A stretch of DNA of 7,704 bases from Prasinococcaceae sp. CCMP 1430 (taxonomy: Eukaryota > Plantae > Prasinodermophyta). Location of the stretch: positions 23,997 to 31,700 of the forward strand of contig RQSC01000313.1 of the NCBI GenBank assembly GCA_013416795.1, read 5' to 3'. This document shows, in pieces, positions 1 through 7,704 of this stretch (positions are counted from its first letter, which is position 1; every line of letters begins with the position of its first letter). A program made the position numbers and the translations under genes. Below the pieces are notes generated by a model. The model was not told the origin of the DNA, did not search any database, and worked only from the letters and a program-made list of their open reading frames with translations.

Positions 1-351
1 CCCCCCCCCCTCCCCCCCCTGTTCCCCTTCGCGCAACGGGCCAAGCAGCCCTGCGGCCGAGCCGCCGCCGCGCCTCCCCCCCCCCCGCTCCGGCCGTCCT
101 GCGCGCAGCAGCGTTGGCAACGGCGGCGAGGCGGGAAGGGCGGGGGCGCAGCGCGCCAGGCGACGCCGCGATCCTCCTCGGGGAACCGTCGCTGCGGCGG
201 TGCCTTTCAGTTAGGGTCATATGTTTGGGGTTTTGAAGGAGGGTTAATGCCACGGTTGATGCATGAAGATCGACGTGCGTGTTGGCGGGCGCGGCCGGTT
301 GTGCCACAGCCTTGGCGCGCTGCGCCTCCCCCCCCCAACACACACACACAC
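1..351. repeat. Low-complexity C-runs and a short (CA)n tract in the upstream region
   Basis: C-runs at 1-19, 76-86 and 328-336 (the last two both preceded by gcgcct); CA repeat at about 338-351. Confidence 0.7.
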
Positions 352-432
352 CCCACGCCCTCGGGCGAGGGTCCGGCGCGCACAGCGCGTGGGGGAGACA
401 CTCTCCGGCCCGCCTGCCGCCGCGCGGGCGCG

Positions 433-620
433 ATGTCGTCGCATGGCCGCGGCTCGAAGGGCGGCACGCGCGGCGGACGCGACCAGTTCAAGTGGAGCGA
501 CGTGCGCGAGGACGCGGACCACGGGTGCTACATCGGTGCCAGCATGAAGGCGCGCAAGGGCGGGCGGCGCCATGGGCGGCGCGGCGTCGCGCTGGAGCCA
601 GCGCCCGTGGACGATGGAAG
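433..620 (+). CDS. Exon encoding an MMTAG2 (multiple myeloma tumor-associated protein 2)-like N-terminal MMtag motif
   Basis: ATG at 433 reads MSSHGRGSKGGTRGGRDQFKWSDVREDADHGCYIGASMKA, matching the family pattern GGxRGGxDQFxWxDVKxDxxxxxYLGxSxKA as I recall it. Codons are strongly G/C-ending in this frame. The family's following GRWQKGxDLxWY segment is not recognisable. The exon ends at AG|GTACGC (620/621). Confidence 0.7.
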
Positions 621-1755
621 GTACGCCGTGGCAAGCGCTGCGTGCGTGTCGTCACTCACCACGGCTGCGCTCTCCGCCTGGAGGGGAGGGGACGAGCCAC
701 TGTCGCGCGGATGCCCGCACAGACACGGGCGACGCGCCACTCATGCACGCCAGTGCTCTCTCGAGCGCCCGCTGACGCCACTCTTCGCGCTGCGACCGCC
801 AGATGCACCCGAGGGCGTCGGCGATGTGTGCGCCGTGGTGACCGGCGCGAATTCGGGCATCGGGCTGGCGGCGTGCGAGGCGCTGGCGGCGCGCGGCGCG
901 CGCGTCGTCATGTGCGTGCGGTCGCCGCAGCGTGCCGCCGAGGCCATATCTCGCGTGCGCGAGGCGGCGCCGGAAGGCGGCGACGCGAGCATCGCCGTGG
1001 TGACCATGGATCTGGCGGACCTCGAGTCTGTGCGCACCGCCGCGGCGCAGATCTCCACGGAGCACAAGCCCAACGCGCTGCTGCTCAACGCCGGCGTGAT
1101 GGCGGTGCCGTTTGCACTGACGAAGGACGGACACGAGACGCAGTGGCAGACGAACGTGCTGGGGCACTACGTGCTTACGGGGGCGCTGCTGCCGGCGCTG
1201 GAGGCGAACGCTCGGGAGGGCGCGCCGAGCCGCGTGGTGTCGCAGTCGTCCGCCTTCCACCGGTACATGCCCTTTCGCATGCGCGACGACGTGGACGATG
1301 AGCAGAAGTACGAGCAGTGGCGCGCCTACGCGCGCACCAAGGCTGCGAACATCTGGTTCTGCCTGGAGCTGCAGCGGCGGCTGGAGGCGTCGGGCAAGGC
1401 GGACAAGGTGATGTCGCTCGCCTGCCACCCGGGCTACAGCGCAACGGGCCTGCAGTTCACGCCCGGCAAGCCGCAGAGCGCTTTCTCGTGGAGCAACACG
1501 CTCTTCGCGCAGACGGCCGAGGGTGGCGCTCAGCCGCTGCTGCGCGCGGCGCTGGACCCCGACGCGGCGCCTGGCGATTTCTTCGGCCCGCAAGACAACT
1601 ACACAATGCCCCTTGCGAGTTACGGCATGACGGGCGGAGGCGCAATAAGGGAGACGCCCGCGGCGCTGGCGCGCGACGGCGAGCAGGCGAGGCTCTGCTG
1701 GGACGTGCTGGCCACGCAGGCGGGCGGGGACATCCTCCCCGGCGTCGACAACTGA
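614..1755 (+). CDS. Short-chain dehydrogenase/reductase, WWOX/retinol dehydrogenase (RDH11-14)-like classical SDR; predicted exons 614-620 and 803-1755 (319 aa; alternative start at 572)
   Basis: Motifs TGANSGIG (Rossmann TGxxxGxG), LLLNAGVM, NVLGHYVLT, RVVSQSS, catalytic YARTK (YxxxK) and CHPG. Splicing 621-802 joins ATG GAA G to AT GCA CCC, giving MEDAPEGVGDVCAVVTGANSGIG. Stop TGA at 1753-1755. Family call is confident; the start is less so. Confidence 0.85.
621..802 (+). other. Predicted spliceosomal intron (182 nt)
   Basis: Donor AAG|GTACGC at 621, branch-point-like CTGAC at 772-776, acceptor CCGCCAG| ending at 802. Frame-1 codons in this interval lose the G/C-ending bias. The MBD4-like intron has the same donor type (GTACGT) and a CTGAC. 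Confidence 0.7.
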
Positions 1756-1768
1756 CTCTCGCGCCGGG

Positions 1769-1838
1769 CGCGCGGGCGCGGGCGCACGCGCGGGCGCGGG
1801 CACACGCGCGGGAGCGGTCGCACGCGCGGGCGCGGGCG
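1769..1838. repeat. 18-bp GC-rich tandem minisatellite, about 4 copies (consensus CGCGCGGGCGCGGGCGCA), last copy interrupted by plastid DNA
   Basis: Units: 1769 cgcgcgggcgcgggcgca; 1787 cgcgcgggcgcgggcaca; 1805 cgcgcgggagcggtcgca; 1823 cgcgcgggcgcgggcg, then plastid sequence. Confidence 0.9.
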
Positions 1839-1839
1839 A

Positions 1840-2115
1840 CGTGGTGAACGTATGTATGCATTTCTTGATCGATTAGTTCATTTAGCTCTTCCACGAATTC
1901 GTGATTTTCGTGGAATTAAACGATCAGGTTTCGATGGAAAAGGAAACTATACTTTAGGCCTTACTGATCAATTACTGTTTCCTGAAATTGATTTTGATAA
2001 AATTGCTCGTTTAGATGGAATGAATATTTCAATTGTAACAACTGCAAAAACTGACCGTGATGCAGAGGTTTTATTAGAAACTATTGGCATTCCTTTTGCT
2101 CAAACTGGAAAATAG
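1840..2115 (+). pseudogene. rpl5: 5'-truncated plastid ribosomal protein L5 (C-terminal half only)
   Basis: CGT GGT GAA CGT ATG TAT GCA reads [25 protein letters not shown]...[21 protein letters not shown]...[13 protein letters not shown], the conserved L5 core. The ATG at 1852 is an internal Met, and the N-terminal half is replaced by GC-rich repeat DNA. Confidence 0.93.
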
Positions 2116-2158
2116 CAATTTGCATCAACTTTTAGGTCCCAATATTTTTTAATTAATT

Positions 2159-2563
2159 ATGCACACTATTGCTGATACATTAACGCGTATTCGTAATGCT
2201 CAATTACGTAAAGCACGATATGTTTTAATCCCAAAAACAAACATGGCAAAACAACTTGTCATGATTTTATCAAATGAAGGGTTTTTAGACGGTGTAGAAG
2301 AGTTATCACAAAAGACTCAAAAAGCATCGCAACGTTTTTTACGTGTTTCTTTACCCGCTCAAAATCAAACAACAAAAGCAAAACCTCATGTTATGAAAGT
2401 CGTAAGTAGACCTGGGTGTCGTGTTTATGTAAACGCTAAAAATATCCCATCACCACGTCAAAATATGAGTATTTGTATTCTTTCAACTTCAAAAGGTCTC
2501 TTAACGAATAAAGAAGCTCGACTTTTAGGGGTTGGTGGTGAAGTACTTTGTACTGTTTGGTAA
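2159..2563 (+). CDS. rps8: Plastid 30S ribosomal protein S8
   Basis: IADTLTRIRNA, EGFL, SRPGCRVY and ILSTSKGLLTNKEARLLGVGGEVLCTVW are S8 signatures; intact ORF. Confidence 0.96.
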   Translation: MHTIADTLTRIRNAQLRKARYVLIPKTNMAKQLVMILSNEGFLDGVEELSQKTQKASQRFLRVSLPAQNQTTKAKPHVMKVVSRPGCRVYVNAKNIPSPRQNMSICILSTSKGLLTNKEARLLGVGGEVLCTVW

Positions 2564-2576
2564 CACTTTAATTATT

Positions 2577-2580
2577 GAGG
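2577..2580 (+). promoter_or_regulatory. Shine-Dalgarno-like GAGG upstream of rpl36
   Basis: GAGG ends 9 nt before the ATG at 2590. Confidence 0.5.
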
Positions 2581-2589
2581 AAATTATCT

Positions 2590-2703
2590 ATGAAAGTACG
2601 CTCATCTGTTAAAAAAATGTGCGAACATTGTCGCTGTATTCGTCGACGTGGGCGCGTATTAATTATTTGTAAAGTTAAAAAACATAAGCAACGTCAAGGT
2701 TAA
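2590..2703 (+). CDS. rpl36: Plastid 50S ribosomal protein L36 (37 aa; absent from the ORF track)
   Basis: Hand translation: [37 protein letters not shown], with the CxxC...C...H zinc ligands and the HKQRQG end. Confidence 0.96.
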
Positions 2704-2723
2704 ATTATTCTTGCTAACAATTT

Positions 2724-3119
2724 ATGCAAAAAACAAAACGAAAAAATTTAACAACTCTAAAACGAAAGAAAAAAATTACTAATGGTATTGTGTATATTAA
2801 TGCAACCTTTAATAATACATTAGTCACAATTACTGATTGGACAGGAAATGTATATTCATGGTCATCAGCTGGGGCTTGTGGCTTTCGTGGTGCAAAGAAA
2901 AGCACACCATTCGCTGCTCAAACAGCAGTAAGAGTCGCATTACAACCCTGTATTGATCGTGGATTACAAACTGCTGAAGTTATTTTATGTGGACCTGGGT
3001 CTGGCCGTGAAACAGCTTTACGTGCAGTTCATACCGCAGGTGTACGTCTAACTTTAATTCGCGATGTTACGCCAGTTCCACACAATGGATGTCGACCAAA
3101 GAAAAAACGTCGCATTTAA
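2724..3119 (+). CDS. rps11: Plastid 30S ribosomal protein S11
   Basis: [64 protein letters not shown]. Confidence 0.97.
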
Positions 3120-3205
3120 CGGTTTTTTGAAGACAATAAAAAAAACAATATTAAGAGTTATACCGTATTATTCTTCTTAACATTCTTCAAACTTTTTGAT
3201 TCTTT

Positions 3206-4123
3206 ATGTCACTTTCTAGTGCTAAAAATCTAATTTCTGTTTCAAATAAATTTACTATCCATCATCAACAAGAGCGTGTGGATTCAAAACAAGGAATTTA
3301 TGGATGTTTTCGTATTGGACCATTTAAAGGAACAAAATCATTAACATTCGCAAATTTATTACGTCGAACATTACTCCATGAAATACCAGGTACTGGTATC
3401 GTGCAAGTAATTTTCCAAACTCCTACACACGAATTCTCAACTCTTCCTGGAGTACAAGAATCGGTGATTGATATTCTCTTAAACCTAAAACAACTTACTT
3501 TTCAAGGATATTGTGGAAACTATAAACGTGGAACAATTTCTAAGAAAGGCCCCGCAATTATTACAGCTAAAGATTTAAATTTGCCATACCCTATTATTGC
3601 AAGTTTTCCAGATCAAATTATTGCACACCTTAATACTGGATTCGAGTTTAAGATGGATTTTATTTTGAAAACAGATAAAGGCTCATCCCTTCCAATGTTG
3701 AAAAAATCGGTTACATCTTCTTCTTCATTATTTTTACAAAATGATTTTAGTCCCATTAAAAAAGTAAATTATACAATTTGTGAAGAACGATTAAAAGAAT
3801 GGATTGAACTAGAGATTTGGACAGATGGTAGTATTCAACCCTATTTAGCTCTTCAAACAGCTGTACAAAATATTTTTTGTGAATTTGAAGATTTATATCC
3901 AAAGACTTTAGAATTAAGTACTGAATCATTCTATTCTAAACAATTAAATTTACACAATCATAGAATTGAAAATTTATTTCTTCCTATTGATATGTATAAA
4001 GGATTAAAATGTAAGCAATTAAAAAATGATAAGAATTTAGAAAATTTTCACAATTGGGAAATGTTTTCTAAAGAATATGATGTATCATTAGATTTATTGA
4101 AACCTTTTTTTCTTAAAAAGTAA
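3206..4123 (+). CDS. rpoA: Plastid-encoded RNA polymerase alpha subunit (divergent C-terminal domain)
   Basis: YGCFRIGPF...LRRTLLHEI, HEFSTLPGVQESVIDILLNLK, KGPAIITAKDL, LEIWTDGSIQP; located directly after rps11. Confidence 0.93.
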   Translation: MSLSSAKNLISVSNKFTIHHQQERVDSKQGIYGCFRIGPFKGTKSLTFANLLRRTLLHEIPGTGIVQVIFQTPTHEFSTLPGVQESVIDILLNLKQLTFQGYCGNYKRGTISKKGPAIITAKDLNLPYPIIASFPDQIIAHLNTGFEFKMDFILKTDKGSSLPMLKKSVTSSSSLFLQNDFSPIKKVNYTICEERLKEWIELEIWTDGSIQPYLALQTAVQNIFCEFEDLYPKTLELSTESFYSKQLNLHNHRIENLFLPIDMYKGLKCKQLKNDKNLENFHNWEMFSKEYDVSLDLLKPFFLKK

Positions 4124-4134
4124 TTTATTAAACT

Positions 4135-4554
4135 ATGACAAATGAAGCCTCTGTAAAATTATCAGCCTATACAGGTATTGGCCGACGAAAAACATCAGTA
4201 GCCAGAGTTGGGCTCTCTGAAACAACTGAAAAAACAAGTTTTTTTATTAATGGGCAACCTGCATCGCATTATTTATGCGCAAACCCAACTTTATTAGCTA
4301 AAGTTTGTGCACCATTAGATCTACTTGGGGTTGAAAATACGTTCTCTATTAATGCTGTTGTAAATGGCGGAGGACTAACAGGACAAACGGATGCTATCCA
4401 ATTAGGATTAGCACGTGCTCTTACACAATTAAGCCCTAAGTATCAACCTTTATTACGTAGTGAAGGTCTTTTAACGCGAGATTCACGTCGTGTTGAGCGA
4501 AAAAAATATGGCTTAAAGAAAGCTAGAAAAGCTCCACAATTTTCAAAGCGTTAA
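4135..4554 (+). CDS. rps9: Plastid 30S ribosomal protein S9
   Basis: GIGRRKTSVARV, VNGGGLTGQTDAIQLGLARAL, GLLTRDSRRVERKKYGLKKARKAPQFSKR. Confidence 0.97.
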   Translation: MTNEASVKLSAYTGIGRRKTSVARVGLSETTEKTSFFINGQPASHYLCANPTLLAKVCAPLDLLGVENTFSINAVVNGGGLTGQTDAIQLGLARALTQLSPKYQPLLRSEGLLTRDSRRVERKKYGLKKARKAPQFSKR

Positions 4555-4575
4555 TTTATATCCCTTTTTTGTATT

Positions 4576-4908
4576 ATGACATATGCAATTATCGAAGCTG
4601 GGGGACATCAATTAAGAATTGAAGTTGGTCGATTCTATGACATTGACTATGTGCCCCAATCAAAACCTGAAGCTCAACTATTTTTTCAACGTGTACTTCT
4701 TCTTTCATATCAAACAGAAACTATTTTTGGAAAACCTTGGATTCCAGGTAGTTATGTGCGTGCAAAAGTTTTATATCACTTTCAAAAGAAAAAGGTACGC
4801 GTCTATAAAATGCGTCCCAAGAAGAAAACACGCAAAATTCAAGGACATCGCCAATTACAAACTCGTATTTATATTGAGTCAATTGGTATGGCTTCAACAG
4901 AAGCGTAA
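4576..4908 (+). CDS. rpl21: Plastid 50S ribosomal protein L21
   Basis: MTYAIIEAGGHQLRIEVG, FGKPWI and KVRVYKMRPKKKTRKIQGHRQLQTRIYIESI match the plastid/cyanobacterial L21 pattern. Confidence 0.93.
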   Translation: MTYAIIEAGGHQLRIEVGRFYDIDYVPQSKPEAQLFFQRVLLLSYQTETIFGKPWIPGSYVRAKVLYHFQKKKVRVYKMRPKKKTRKIQGHRQLQTRIYIESIGMASTEA

Positions 4909-4931
4909 ACACTTTTAAACGTTTATCGAAT

Positions 4932-5117
4932 ATGCCAACTAAAAATAAAGAACGTACAAAAACTCTTTTATTAGAAGAAGTACAAAGTTTTACAGTTCGG
5001 GTTAAAGAATTAACATCACATCTTCAAAAAAATCCAAAAGATTTTTCTGCAGAACGTGGACTGTATCAAATCTTAGCAAAGCGCAAGCGTTTATTAAAAT
5101 ACTTAAATACTCTATAA
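4932..5117 (+). CDS. rps15: Shortened plastid 30S ribosomal protein S15 (61 aa)
   Basis: EVQSFTVRVKELTSHLQKNPKDFSAERGLYQILAKRKRLLKYL aligns with the S15 core E.Q...T.++..LT.HL..+.KD.S..RGL...+.KR.RLL.YL. The usual C-terminal Y..LI..LGIR helix is absent. Confidence 0.82.
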   Translation: MPTKNKERTKTLLLEEVQSFTVRVKELTSHLQKNPKDFSAERGLYQILAKRKRLLKYLNTL

Positions 5118-5192
5118 ACCAAAGAAAAAGTAAATTTAGTAATACATTTTCGCTTACATAGAATTTTTCTTTTCTTTATACATTATTATTCT

Positions 5193-5561
5193 ATGCCAAC
5201 ATTTCAACAATTAGTTCGTAAAAATCGTTTTTCTATTGAAAAGAAAACAAAATCACCAGCACTTGTAAATTGCCCACAACGTCGCGGCGTATGTACACGT
5301 GTTTATACAACAACACCGAAAAAACCAAACTCTGCTTTGCGTAAAGTTGCTCGTGTCCGTCTAACTTCTGGTTTTGAAGTAACAGCTTATATCCCAGGAA
5401 TCGGACATAATATTCAAGAACACTCTGTTGTTCTTGTGCGTGGAGGGCGAGTTAAGGATTTACCAGGTGTTCGCTATCATGTTGTACGTGGCGCCTTAGA
5501 TACAGCGGGTGTAAAAAATAGAACACAACGCCGTTCGAAATATGGGGCTAAAAAACCTTAA
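5193..5561 (+). CDS. rps12: Plastid 30S ribosomal protein S12 (contiguous, not trans-spliced)
   Basis: [65 protein letters not shown]. Confidence 0.98.
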
Positions 5562-5603
5562 TATTCAACAATATTAAGTAAATTTTTATAACTTTTCTAA
5601 TCT

Positions 5604-5607
5604 ATGT
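5604..5607 (+). pseudogene. Probable first 4 nt (ATG T) of the next plastid gene, most likely rps7, cut at the junction
   Basis: ATG lies 42 nt after the rps12 stop in the same TCT-ATG context as rpl36 and rps12. rps12-rps7 is the conserved adjacency, and rps7 usually starts Met-Ser. Only 4 nt are visible. Confidence 0.4.
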
Positions 5608-5608
5608 N
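5608..5608. other. Single ambiguous base (N) exactly at the AT-rich/GC-rich junction
   Basis: ...ctaatctatgt N ggcagctgcggcc...; it is the only N in the window. Confidence 0.97.
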
Positions 5609-5851
5609 GGCAGCTGCGGCCGCGGAACGGGGGTTCATTTCGCCGCCGCGAATTTTCCTGGCGGGGGCGCGGGAGGTGCGCGCGCGCGCGCGTGTGTGTC
5701 TGGGGGAGGGTCGTGGAAAAGTTCCGTGAGATCGCGCGAGAGGGCGGAGGGGGTGCCGCGCGCTCCCGGCAGGCGGTGCCAGACCGCGCACGCACGCAGG
5801 GCGTCGTAGGCCCTCGCAACAAACCAACCAACCACCCGGCGCGCAAGCAAG

Positions 5852-6628
5852 ATGGTCGTCCGACGCAGGAGCACGCTCGCCTCCGCCGCCCTCGCGGCGC
5901 TGGTGCTGGCGGCCGCCGCGCCAAAAAGCGCCCTCGCGCAGGCCGACGACAAGGTCGACCAGTCGTCGCTGCCGATCCAGGTGGGCGTCGAGATCGAGGC
6001 GCCGTCCAACGGGACCTTCACCGCCAGCCAGGACACGATGACCGTCAACTGGGAGGCCCTGCCCCTCGACAGCCTGGCGTTCGACCCGGACAACGCCACC
6101 GTGGTGGTGCGCCTGTGCTGGGCCAAGGCGGACATCGCCGACCGCCCCTGGCGCAAGTTCAAGGACCCCATCGACAAGGACCGCCAGTGCAAGAACAAGG
6201 TCAAGGCGGACACCAACACGCCCTTCTCGGACGGCACGACCTCCTTCCTCATCGACGGCAACCAGCCGGCGGCCTTCTACTGGGCGCGCGTGCTCGTCAT
6301 CGACGGCGGCGCGTACGTCGCGAATGGCGGCAGCGCCGACGCCGGCAGCGACCCGCAAACCACCGACTGCGACCTCATGGAGAGTTTGACCGACCTGGTG
6401 TGCGAGACGTTCGAGGTGACGAACGTCCTCGGCACCAGCGTGGGCCTGTACGTGGCGATCGGCCTGACCGCCGCGCTGGGCCCCGCGGTGTTGGCCATCT
6501 TCATGTTTTTCGAGCGCTTCCGCGGCGCCAAGGACTTCGAGGGCGGCGCCCCCGGCATCGCGGCTGGCGCCACCGCTGCGGAGCTGCCCACCAGCGCCAA
6601 CGAGGTCGAGGTCGCGGGGGTCAACTGA
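5852..6628 (+). CDS. NAR2: NAR2/NRT3 high-affinity nitrate transporter accessory protein
   Basis: N-terminal signal-peptide-like stretch (LASAALAALVLAAAA). VVVRLCWAKADIADRPWRKFKDPIDKDRQC matches NAR2 KVKLCYAP...DRPWRK...L.KDKTC, and QPAAFYWARV matches P.ATYFVRA. One C-terminal hydrophobic helix ends in MFFERF. Intronless with G/C-ending codons and an A-rich context (gcaagATG). Confidence 0.88.
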   Translation: MVVRRRSTLASAALAALVLAAAAPKSALAQADDKVDQSSLPIQVGVEIEAPSNGTFTASQDTMTVNWEALPLDSLAFDPDNATVVVRLCWAKADIADRPWRKFKDPIDKDRQCKNKVKADTNTPFSDGTTSFLIDGNQPAAFYWARVLVIDGGAYVANGGSADAGSDPQTTDCDLMESLTDLVCETFEVTNVLGTSVGLYVAIGLTAALGPAVLAIFMFFERFRGAKDFEGGAPGIAAGATAAELPTSANEVEVAGVN

Positions 6629-6759
6629 ACGATTCCCGACGAGAGCCGGGCGAGGCTGGGCCGTCACTTCGTCAGCACATAGAGGGGCGCGAACGCTCGC
6701 GCGTTCGCCGCGACGCACTAGGACAAGGGTAACAACACACACATTTTTCTCAAGAGCCT

Positions 6760-7704
6760 CTACTTCTTTACCCGCCTCTTCTGCCACTCCGAGAACCCCC
6801 TGAGCGTCTTGTCGGCGGGCGTGAACGTCAGGTCGCCCTCGCAGAACAGCCGGAAGCTGTCCACGCCGAAGGCGCCGATGCCGTAGATCTTGACGTCCTT
6901 GTCGAGGCCCACCTTTTGTTTGGCCCCACCGTGCGCCGACCGGATCGCGCGCCACGTCAGAGCGAGTCGCACGAGCGCGCCGCTCGCAGCGCCGAATGCA
7001 GCTCTCTCGCCCCCCAACCAACTAACCAACCCAACCAACCCATCAACTAAAAAAAAAAAAAATGTCGTCGTGCTGTGTACACGTACCTCGAACACCCCCG
7101 CCCCCAGGAACCTCTCCGTGACGGCCACCACCGACTTCACCCGGTTCTCGAAGAGCCCCAGGGGCGCCATCACCTCGAACAGGTCCGCGCTCGAGGCGAC
7201 GATCGCGTCCGACGGCGTGGGCCAGCGCTCGAAGAAGGCCGCGATGGCGCTGTGCTTCGTGTTCCACGAGCTCACGCGCGACATGAGCACGCAGGCGATG
7301 AGCAGCTGCCACTGGTCGAAGGCGTAGAACTCCTGGAGCAGGCCCTGCGGCGAGGGCGGCGGCGGGCGGCTCATGCGCGAGCGCACGTACGCCTCCCAGT
7401 CGAAGCCGTCGTCGTCCCGCGCAGCTCGCGCGACCTCCTTTCCCCAGCGCCGCACGGCCTCCGCCCGCCACTCGCACCCGCCGCCGGCGGCCTCCCCCCC
7501 GAGCGCGAGCAGCGCCGCGCGGCTGCGCTCGAGCCACCGCTGCGTCTCCGCCAGCATGTCCTCCTCGGTGCGCCGCGGCGAGAACGACACGCCCGCGTCG
7601 GCGCCGTCCGAGCCGTCCGAGTCGCTCAGCGCGTCGACGGCCGCGCCGGTGTAGTCGGGCTTGGCGCCCCGGAGGCGCGAGGAGCGGCGCTCGGGCCCCA
7701 GCGC
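6760..7704 (-). CDS. MBD4-like HhH-GPD DNA glycosylase, 5' end outside the window; predicted exons >7704-7087 and 6912-6760
   Basis: GLLQEFYAFDQWQLLIACVLMSR, FFERWPTP, PLGLFENRVKSV, IYGIGAFGVDSFRLFC and DKTLRGFSEW match the MBD4 glycosylase domain (LIQE...DPWKLLIA..FLN, PLGL...RA, LHGIGKYG.DSY.IFC, D..L..Y..W). The frame stays open from 7590 (GTG = Val, not a start) to the window edge: ALGPERRSSRLRGAKPDYTGAAVDALSDSDGSDGADAG. Stop TAG at 6762-6760. Confidence 0.88.
   Translation of the reverse strand, partial: ALGPERRSSRLRGAKPDYTGAAVDALSDSDGSDGADAGVSFSPRRTEEDMLAETQRWLERSRAALLALGGEAAGGGCEWRAEAVRRWGKEVARAARDDDGFDWEAYVRSRMSRPPPPSPQGLLQEFYAFDQWQLLIACVLMSRVSSWNTKHSAIAAFFERWPTPSDAIVASSADLFEVMAPLGLFENRVKSVVAVTERFLGAGVFEVRVHSTTTFFFFLVDGLVGLVSWLGGERAAFGAASGALVRLALTWRAIRSAHGGAKQKVGLDKDVKIYGIGAFGVDSFRLFCEGDLTFTPADKTLRGFSEWQKRRVKK
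6913..7086 (-). other. Spliceosomal intron (174 nt, phase 0, in frame and stop-free) in the MBD4-like gene
   Basis: Minus strand: TTCGAG|GTACGT...CTGAC...AAACAAAAG|GTGGGC. Contains a poly-T run and (TTGG)n low-complexity sequence. Removing it restores MBD4-like spacing (FLGAGVFE-VGLDKDVKIYGIG). Confidence 0.85.

Follow-up and report, generated by a model that had tools for sequence, protein, structure and literature searches.

The contiguous block of chloroplast genes at positions 1839–5607 of the window (the whole 7,704-nucleotide stretch of DNA analysed here), which is flanked by nuclear DNA on both sides, is very probably the own high-copy chloroplast DNA of Prasinoderma coloniale. On the evidence of the sequence comparisons it would have become part of a nuclear contig while the genome was being sequenced or assembled, and would not be resident in the nucleus. 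An assembly error is very strongly indicated by the displacement of native genes together with the letter-exact identity to the plastome and an N at the end of the block. The initial annotation had considered this region either a very young NUPT or a plastid/nuclear chimera; the N at position 5608, an orphan 51-mer and the missing native genes favour the chimera, and the young NUPT is the part of that proposal that is not supported.

Two Tara plastome scaffolds (L001 and L002) were used as the reference for the identity of the block. BLASTN against the plastome had been proposed as a check on identity and private SNPs, and it showed that positions 1839–5607 correspond to L001:8634–12402 and to the same range in L002 over all 3769 nt without a single mismatch or gap (100.000% identity); substitutions private to the block relative to the plastome numbered 0/3769. 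The GC content is 0.333 in the block versus 0.729 in positions 1–1838 and 0.695 in positions 5609–7704. The block and the plastome contigs agree in gene order (rpl5-rps8-rpl36-rps11-rpoA-rps9-rpl21-rps15-rps12-rps7), and the eight intact genes and cut rpl5 that had been described from this region are all borne out. On the forward strand, the 3' part of rpl5 (1839–2115), cut inside codon 93 of 184, is followed by complete copies of rps8 (2159–2563, 134 aa), rpl36 (2590–2703, 37 aa), rps11 (2724–3119, 131 aa), rpoA (3206–4123, 305 aa), rps9 (4135–4554, 139 aa), rpl21 (4576–4908, 110 aa), rps15 (4932–5117, 61 aa) and rps12 (5193–5561, 122 aa), and then by the first 4 nt of rps7 (5604–5607), so that both ends of the block do lie inside genes, as had been claimed. 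These genes were identified by comparison with the plastome, and Pfam confirmed the domains L5_C, S8, S11, RpoA, S9, L21p, S15 and S12. All eight complete genes are equal in length to their counterparts in the plastome contigs; this includes rps15, which is indeed short but is not truncated, the plastome copy being also of 61 aa. The exact rpoA of the block was found with plastid neighbours in 24 of the 24 inspected contigs that carry the same rpoA, and with nuclear neighbours in 0.

The plastid block is absent from all 16 independent contigs of wild Prasinoderma with which the window was compared. Eight of these contigs cross a breakpoint, and all eight continue into native DNA; the other eight carry an S10-NRT2 stretch that is missing from the window. 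Presence or absence in other strains had been put forward as a check on the insertion, and its outcome is against it. The wild contigs are diverged by 2–5% from the window and therefore do not represent the same strain; L003 is near-identical to it (1 mismatch in 1383 nt). The Logan runs SRR22824283, SRR22824304 and SRR22824306 were treated as genotypes related to CCMP1413 and not as CCMP1413 itself, in view of the NRT2 differences of L024 and L025 given below. At the left breakpoint (1826/1827), the contigs L009, L010, L014 and L016 diverge from the window and lead into an exon of an S10 peptidase. At the right breakpoint (5659/5660), L003, L019, L021 and L022 diverge from the window into native DNA. 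The S10 peptidase gene is present in twelve contigs (L009–L018, L024, L025) and continues into NRT2 in ten of them (L011–L018, L024, L025). NRT2 contigs terminate in an (AC)n tract, and the three contigs reaching furthest upstream of 5660 (L003, L021, L022) have in common a conserved spacer beginning in (AC)n, with L003:1–326 being 94% identical to L021. At the native locus, nitrate reductase is followed by SDR, the S10 peptidase, a minus-strand NRT2, ~1.1 kb of spacer with (AC)n at its end, and NAR2, an arrangement in which NRT2 and NAR2 would be adjacent across the (AC)n tract (0 of the contigs compared span NRT2-(AC)n-NAR2). The window is without ~4.3 kb of this native DNA, comprising the S10 peptidase, NRT2 and the spacer. 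An empty site, where the flanks occur without the block, has these flanks ~4.3 kb apart with the S10 peptidase and NRT2 between them. The proposal of an endosymbiotic transfer caught before decay does not agree with this arrangement, as the block takes the place of ~4.3 kb of native sequence and is not an insertion into a collinear locus.

The published gene models of CCMP1413 side with the independent contigs, and not with the window. The model PRCOL_00003048 (P0122, 611 aa) consists of the exact SDR of the window spliced to S10 exons, PRCOL_00003047 is the nitrate reductase, and NRT2 is represented by PRCOL_00003049. An MMETSP transcript from CCMP1413 is identical to this NRT2, and nothing in the window matches the transcript. 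A second NRT2 copy of CCMP1413, PRCOL_00003055, is different by 1 aa, and the NRT2 of L024 and L025 is different from that of CCMP1413 by 2–3 residues. The CCMP1413 NRT2 transcript L026 ends 59 nt before the S10 stop codon and therefore does not by itself prove the adjacency of S10 and NRT2 in CCMP1413.

To the left of the block lies the native SDR gene (559–1838, forward strand), with its annotated ATG at 572 and its stop codon at 1753–1755, and this segment is 97.5–97.9% identical to L009 and L010 over 559–1826. It had been thought that the block replaces the 3' region of the SDR gene, and this was mistaken: the frame reaches its own stop and aligns with full-length relatives of 309 aa, and the SDR part of PRCOL_00003048 has exactly the same protein sequence. 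Further left, positions 1–558 (forward strand) are nuclear DNA foreign to the locus. They end in a cut MMtag-domain exon (433–558), whose Pfam match spans only profile positions 1–35 of 79, and they have no match in the wild relatives L009 and L010, which reach 0.6 and 5.4 kb beyond the SDR gene on its upstream side. The cut exon abuts the SDR segment at 558/559, with 13 nt between it and the SDR start codon, where the wild relatives differ. This is a third unnatural join in the window, with the caveat that the comparators are 2.5% diverged, so that a difference between strains keeps a small probability. The misjoin at 558/559 involves no plastid DNA.

The two ends of the block differ in how well nuclear contiguity is resolved. 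The left junction (1838/1839) is blunt, gapless and made of fully resolved sequence, and it falls inside a tandem repeat of 90% GC (1769–1838, unit of 18 nt). On the right, contiguity is not resolved: the only ambiguous base of the whole window is the N at 5608, immediately 3' of the block where plastid identity ends, and it is followed by 51 orphan nt of 67% GC (5609–5659) that are neither plastid DNA nor the native DNA upstream of NAR2. All four contigs covering this side (L003, L019, L021, L022) differ from the window across these 51 nt, which had no match among the loci compared or elsewhere in the window, and a 26-mer taken from them has no exact occurrence in 185,579 genomes of bacteria and archaea. 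The right break lies at a stretch of 85% GC that has 9-mers in common with the left repeat. A search of the block ends for a terminal inverted repeat or a target-site duplication found none, in agreement with the initial annotation, and none of the block junctions showed microhomology. A de Bruijn-graph misjoin, which needs a k-mer common to both sides, was considered for the plastid junctions and rejected, because the nuclear and the plastid DNA have no sequence in common there.

The assembly chimera is supported by the conflict between the window and independent sequence at breakpoints common to several contigs (four at 1826/1827 and four at 5659/5660), by the location of the breaks at an N and at GC-rich sequence that is difficult to sequence or assemble, and by the additional misjoin at 558/559. 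As for the technical step that may have produced the join, nuclear contigs or reads would break at the extreme-GC repeats, and the gap would then be bridged by the wrong sequence, either because gap filling or scaffolding ran on into the abundant plastid reads or through a chimeric library molecule. Polishing would render the bridged sequence letter-perfect, and the N at 5608 would be the point where the two sides never met. A point against a chimera is that, with sequence comparison as the basis, the join would still stand without disproof at the level of the reads. Blunt joins, short filler and deletion of the target are also an outcome of end-joining repair at genuine organelle insertions.

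A real insertion would be a very young NUPT private to the strain, in which a double-strand break among the clustered nitrate-assimilation genes was repaired by end joining that took up 3.77 kb of plastid sequence and short filler and deleted ~4.3 kb, namely the S10 peptidase, one of the NRT2 copies and the spacer. We consider this improbable. The blunt and gapless left junction without microhomology and the filler-like DNA at the right end (5609–5659) are what such an event might leave, and the near-identical second NRT2 copy (PRCOL_00003055) would make the deletion tolerable. The perfect identity is also compatible with it, since mutations were measured at 2.0e-10 per site per generation (PMC11884799), a rate at which 0 changes in 3769 nt are expected up to ~1.3 million generations. 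Against it stand the N at the right junction, the native upstream region of NAR2 in the near-identical genotype L003, and the further misjoin (558/559) without plastid DNA in the window. The published CCMP1413 models moreover place S10 and NRT2 directly after SDR. An event private to a culture line other than the annotated CCMP1413 line keeps a low probability. When the cut rpl5 product (87 aa) was looked up exactly in public records, no contig carried it, which is weak evidence of absence and counts on the same side. Few NUPTs are expected where there is one plastid per cell: according to the limited transfer window hypothesis, a single-plastid alga such as a picoalga should hold very few of them (PMC3101015), and an artefact was therefore expected beforehand, this being a statistical expectation and no test of the locus in the window. 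An older NUPT fixed in Prasinoderma coloniale has hardly any probability at all; the presence of plastid DNA between nuclear genes in the window is the sole observation in its favour, and against it are the 0/16 independent wild contigs with the block, its absence from the published annotation and its zero divergence from the plastome.

The error may also have arisen at the bench, as a physical chimeric molecule made by blunt ligation in library preparation or by template switching at G-rich DNA, which the assembler then reproduced correctly, perhaps as an additional, redundant contig. We regard this as rather unlikely, if clearly less so than a genuine insertion, and it is a sub-case of the artefact explanation that differs only in where the error arose. 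Such a molecule would explain why the window is a bluntly joined mosaic of short segments (558, 1280, 3769, 51 and 2045+ nt) and why no k-mer is shared at the plastid junctions. The published assembly was made from PacBio reads with NextDenovo and then polished with Arrow and NextPolish (PMC7455551), and a polishing step with short reads would bring every segment into full agreement with the source from which it came. On the other hand, a consensus assembler requires several reads with the same chimera.

The preferred reading, a chimera of plastid and nuclear DNA, can also be set against known systems. NUPTs of land plants such as Moringa and Asparagus (PMC10789010, PMC6698032; reviewed in PMC7037861) resemble the window in that plastid sequence lies between nuclear genes, ends in plastid genes and is accompanied by no transposase or target-site duplication. 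Unlike the window, they are backed by reads or PCR over both junctions and lie in collinear nuclear DNA, whereas the window has an N at one junction, a loss of 4.3 kb of native DNA and a block that is missing from independent sequences. Organelle-nuclear chimeric contigs, a problem discussed in PMC5570036, share with the window the 100% identity to a high-copy organelle genome, breakpoints at repeats that are difficult to sequence, a gap character at a junction, conflict with other assemblies and nearby misjoins, and no feature of the window that was tested differs from them. The junction anatomy of the window would fit the tobacco transfer experiments of Timmis and colleagues, and the same anatomy also fits chimeras of ligation or assembly. 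In that work plastid DNA reportedly entered the nucleus by non-homologous end joining, giving blunt or microhomology junctions, filler and target deletions, and the events are said to have been proven by selection, segregation and junction sequencing.

The biological weight of the block is likely to be little, as the nucleus of this alga is probably without such plastid DNA. In the window the nitrate-assimilation cluster is misrepresented, with NRT2 and the S10 peptidase exons missing and NAR2 without its native upstream region, and eight plastid genes would count as nuclear. The assembly would mislead any survey built on it, whether of NUPTs, of gene transfer, of gene content or of promoters. 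If the NUPT were real, it would be one of zero age in a single-plastid picoalga, a lineage for which the limited transfer window predicts almost none, and if the join were true it would give a rare direct view of the transfer of DNA from organelle to nucleus in a single-plastid alga.

The remaining observations concern the nuclear flanks. A 502-aa open reading frame at 247–1755 gave no record in an exact look-up; the real gene is spliced and the open reading frame spans the 558/559 join. Among the JGI metagenome contigs, the relatives of the SDR were only distant bacterial SDRs (25–37% identity), with no Prasinoderma. To the right of the block, positions 5660–7704 (forward strand) are the native NAR2 locus with a neighbouring minus-strand gene, and the NAR2 coding sequence is found at 5852–6628 on the forward strand (Pfam NAR2). 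This segment is 99.93% identical to L003 and 95–97% identical to L019, L021 and L022, all four alignments begin at 5660, and the transcripts L004 and L005 match it.

GC content is 72.9% over 1-1838, 33.3% over 1839-5607 and 69.5% over 5609-7704. The low-GC block carries, all on the plus strand, the C-terminal part of rpl5 (1839-2115), rps8 (2159-2563), rpl36 (2590-2703), rps11 (2724-3119), rpoA (3206-4123), rps9 (4135-4554), rpl21 (4576-4908), rps15 (4932-5117) and rps12 (5193-5561). Its left flank contains a short-chain dehydrogenase (SDR) reading frame with its own stop codon at 1753-1755, and the right flank contains NAR2 (5852-6628; Pfam NAR2 match). The NAR2 region is 99.9-100% identical to two transcript contigs, L004 and L005; the first 29 nt of the MMETSP contig L004 (L004:1-29) repeat, in inverted orientation, its positions 5813-5841 in window coordinates, typical of a hairpin artefact of transcript assembly.

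Using the rpoA protein in an exact look-up, we recovered plastome scaffolds from the Tara metagenomes, one of them 57 kb long, whose gene set and order match the block and whose surroundings are those of an ordinary plastid genome; rpl23 to rpl5 lie upstream, rps7, tufA and rpl19 downstream, and psaJ, chlI, psbJ/L, cytochrome b559 and ftsI nearby. BLASTN against two of these scaffolds aligned window 1839-5607 with L001:8634-12402 over 3769 nt with 0 mismatches and 0 gaps, so that the block limits proposed in the initial annotation are exact to the base, and the intact plastid block between nuclear genes is present as it was described there. Every complete gene has the length of its plastome counterpart. 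This includes rps15, whose shortness had been set apart initially: it has 61 aa in the plastome also, and the short form is therefore native and does not indicate decay. The block begins within codon 93 of the 184 codons of rpl5 and ends 4 nt inside rps7. Around the ribosomal operon, scaffold L001 (1-20918) retains rpl21, rpl22, the 61-aa rps15, a LysR-type regulator and chlI, together with a chlB/N-type protochlorophyllide reductase subunit and ftsI (PBP transpeptidase). The wild samples match the window at 100% identity over the plastid block and diverge by 2-5% in their nuclear DNA, a contrast that is partly a selection effect because the plastome look-up used the exact rpoA protein.

The left nuclear end is a tandem repeat (1769-1838; 18-nt unit, 90% GC) that halts precisely at the plastid join, its last 12 nt (1827-1838) being an additional partial unit. 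On the right, the only ambiguous base of the window, 5608, adjoins the last plastid base and is followed directly by 51 nt of 67% GC (5609-5659). These 51 nt had no match among the fetched loci, and an exact 26-mer from them was not found in the bacterial and archaeal genome collection. Neither join has any sequence common to nuclear and plastid DNA. Terminal inverted repeats and a target-site duplication were both looked for at the block and are absent, as the initial annotation had stated. G-rich motifs of 85-90% GC, of the GGCGGG / GGGCGCGGG type, occur at all three nuclear breakpoints (1769-1838, 5660-5680 and 559-575), where the left and right flanks have two 9-mers in common; sequence of this kind may lead to a loss of coverage or to template switching.

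With the SDR as protein query, a relative at 97% identity was found on L009, one of a set of independent contigs from wild Prasinoderma. In four of these (L009, L010, L014 and L016) the match to the window ends at 1826, and all four share one continuation, a splice acceptor and then an exon of an S10 serine carboxypeptidase. The S10 gene is present on 12 contigs from different samples (L009-L018, L024, L025), of which 10 (L011-L018, L024, L025) run into a minus-strand MFS transporter whose identity to NRT2, the nitrate/nitrite transporter of P. coloniale, is 98-99%. On L010, nitrate reductase precedes the SDR by about 2.6 kb.

NAR2 was found on four wild contigs (L003, L019, L021, L022), and in all four the match to the window begins exactly at 5660, with 1 mismatch in the following 1383 nt of L003. 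Upstream of this point a conserved spacer beginning in an (AC)n tract is common to L003, L021 and L022, and L019 begins only 6 nt ahead of the point; L003:1-326 agrees with L021 at 94% identity, and the window contains no counterpart of this stretch. The furthest-reaching NRT2 contigs (L011-L013) run for about 1.1 kb past the NRT2 start and stop in an (AC)n tract. In two same-sample pairs, L012 with L021 and L013 with L022, the NRT2 contig ends and the NAR2 contig starts in (AC)n, as would suit a single locus split at the microsatellite; 0 contigs span the tract, and the adjacency of NRT2 and NAR2 across it is inferred. In all samples, short-read contigs that run into this long (AC)n / (ACGC)n microsatellite of the NRT2-NAR2 spacer (L011:3850-4145, L012:3975-4071, the L013 3' end, L003:1-22, L021:1-55) invariably end there.

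The source alga is P. coloniale or a very near relative, with SDR, NAR2 and NRT2 proteins that have identical P. coloniale CCMP1413 entries in EukProt and MMETSP. The published CCMP1413 annotation sides with the wild contigs against the window. The model PRCOL_00003048-RA (611 aa) opens with an SDR sequence identical to that of the window, and a GT donor right before the SDR stop codon leads into S10 exons as in the wild contigs. PRCOL_00003047 is nitrate reductase, and PRCOL_00003049 is NRT2, identical to a CCMP1413 MMETSP transcript, L026, to which nothing in the window corresponds. Since gene models and wild contigs concur, the native order would be nitrate reductase, SDR, S10, NRT2, NAR2. 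About 4.3 kb of native DNA (L012:44 to ~3976, the (AC)n tract and L021:56-375) is absent from the window and is replaced by 12 + 3769 + 1 + 51 nt.

Another discontinuity lies at 558/559. The match between wild contigs and window begins only at 559, 13 nt 5' of the annotated SDR start codon; upstream, the wild contigs hold different, unrelated DNA. Window 433-558 encodes the first 35 of the 79 positions of an MMtag domain (Pfam), which then ends abruptly; neither the MMtag peptide nor any portion of 1-558 was found in the 5.4 kb that L010 carries upstream of its SDR. This looks like a further misjoin, to which the apparent 502-aa MMtag-SDR reading frame is due, and added to the block junctions it would mean that the window is pieced together from at least five segments.

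The plastome identity, the junctions, the wild contigs, the gene models and the 558/559 join all fit a chimera and misfit a nuclear insertion, and from these comparisons the block is very probably part of a chimera, formed either in the assembly or in a library molecule. The published P. coloniale assembly (PMC7455551) was built from PacBio reads by NextDenovo and then polished with Arrow and NextPolish; if the window belongs to it, the window conflicts with the gene models of that very assembly. Of the two readings offered initially, a very young nuclear integrant of plastid DNA (NUPT) or a plastid/nuclear chimera, the second is thus upheld, and wild contigs, gene models and junctions speak against the first. 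A species-wide NUPT is excluded: the wild contigs contradict it, and so does the annotation. Very few NUPTs are expected a priori in single-plastid algae (PMC3101015). A NUPT private to the strain and accompanied by a deletion keeps a small chance: blunt joins, filler and deletion by themselves would fit end-joining capture of organelle DNA too, a second NRT2 copy exists six gene numbers away (PRCOL_00003055, differing by one residue, V398I, in the reference proteome), and at 2.0e-10 mutations per site per generation (PMC11884799) zero substitutions in the block are expected up to roughly a million generations. Our verdict favours the chimera: the plastid block in its nuclear context is very probably no real biological feature, and it is useful as a caution regarding this sequence.

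The nitrate-assimilation cluster of Prasinoderma is compact, with nitrate reductase, SDR/S10, NRT2 on the minus strand and NAR2 on the plus strand, divergent from NRT2 (L010:243-7801, L012, L021). The SDR-then-S10 arrangement is kept in all wild contigs, with a single 559-aa reading frame through both in L010. In PRCOL_00003048 the SDR-to-S10 gap is about 110 nt and the S10 portion is the C-terminal half (window 1744-1838; L009:1772-1880); either SDR and peptidase form one true fusion gene here, or the model merges separate genes. One wild NRT2 variant (L011:1227-2996) encodes 589 aa versus 554 aa; aligned with the CCMP1413 protein, it carries 35 inserted residues and is 93% identical.
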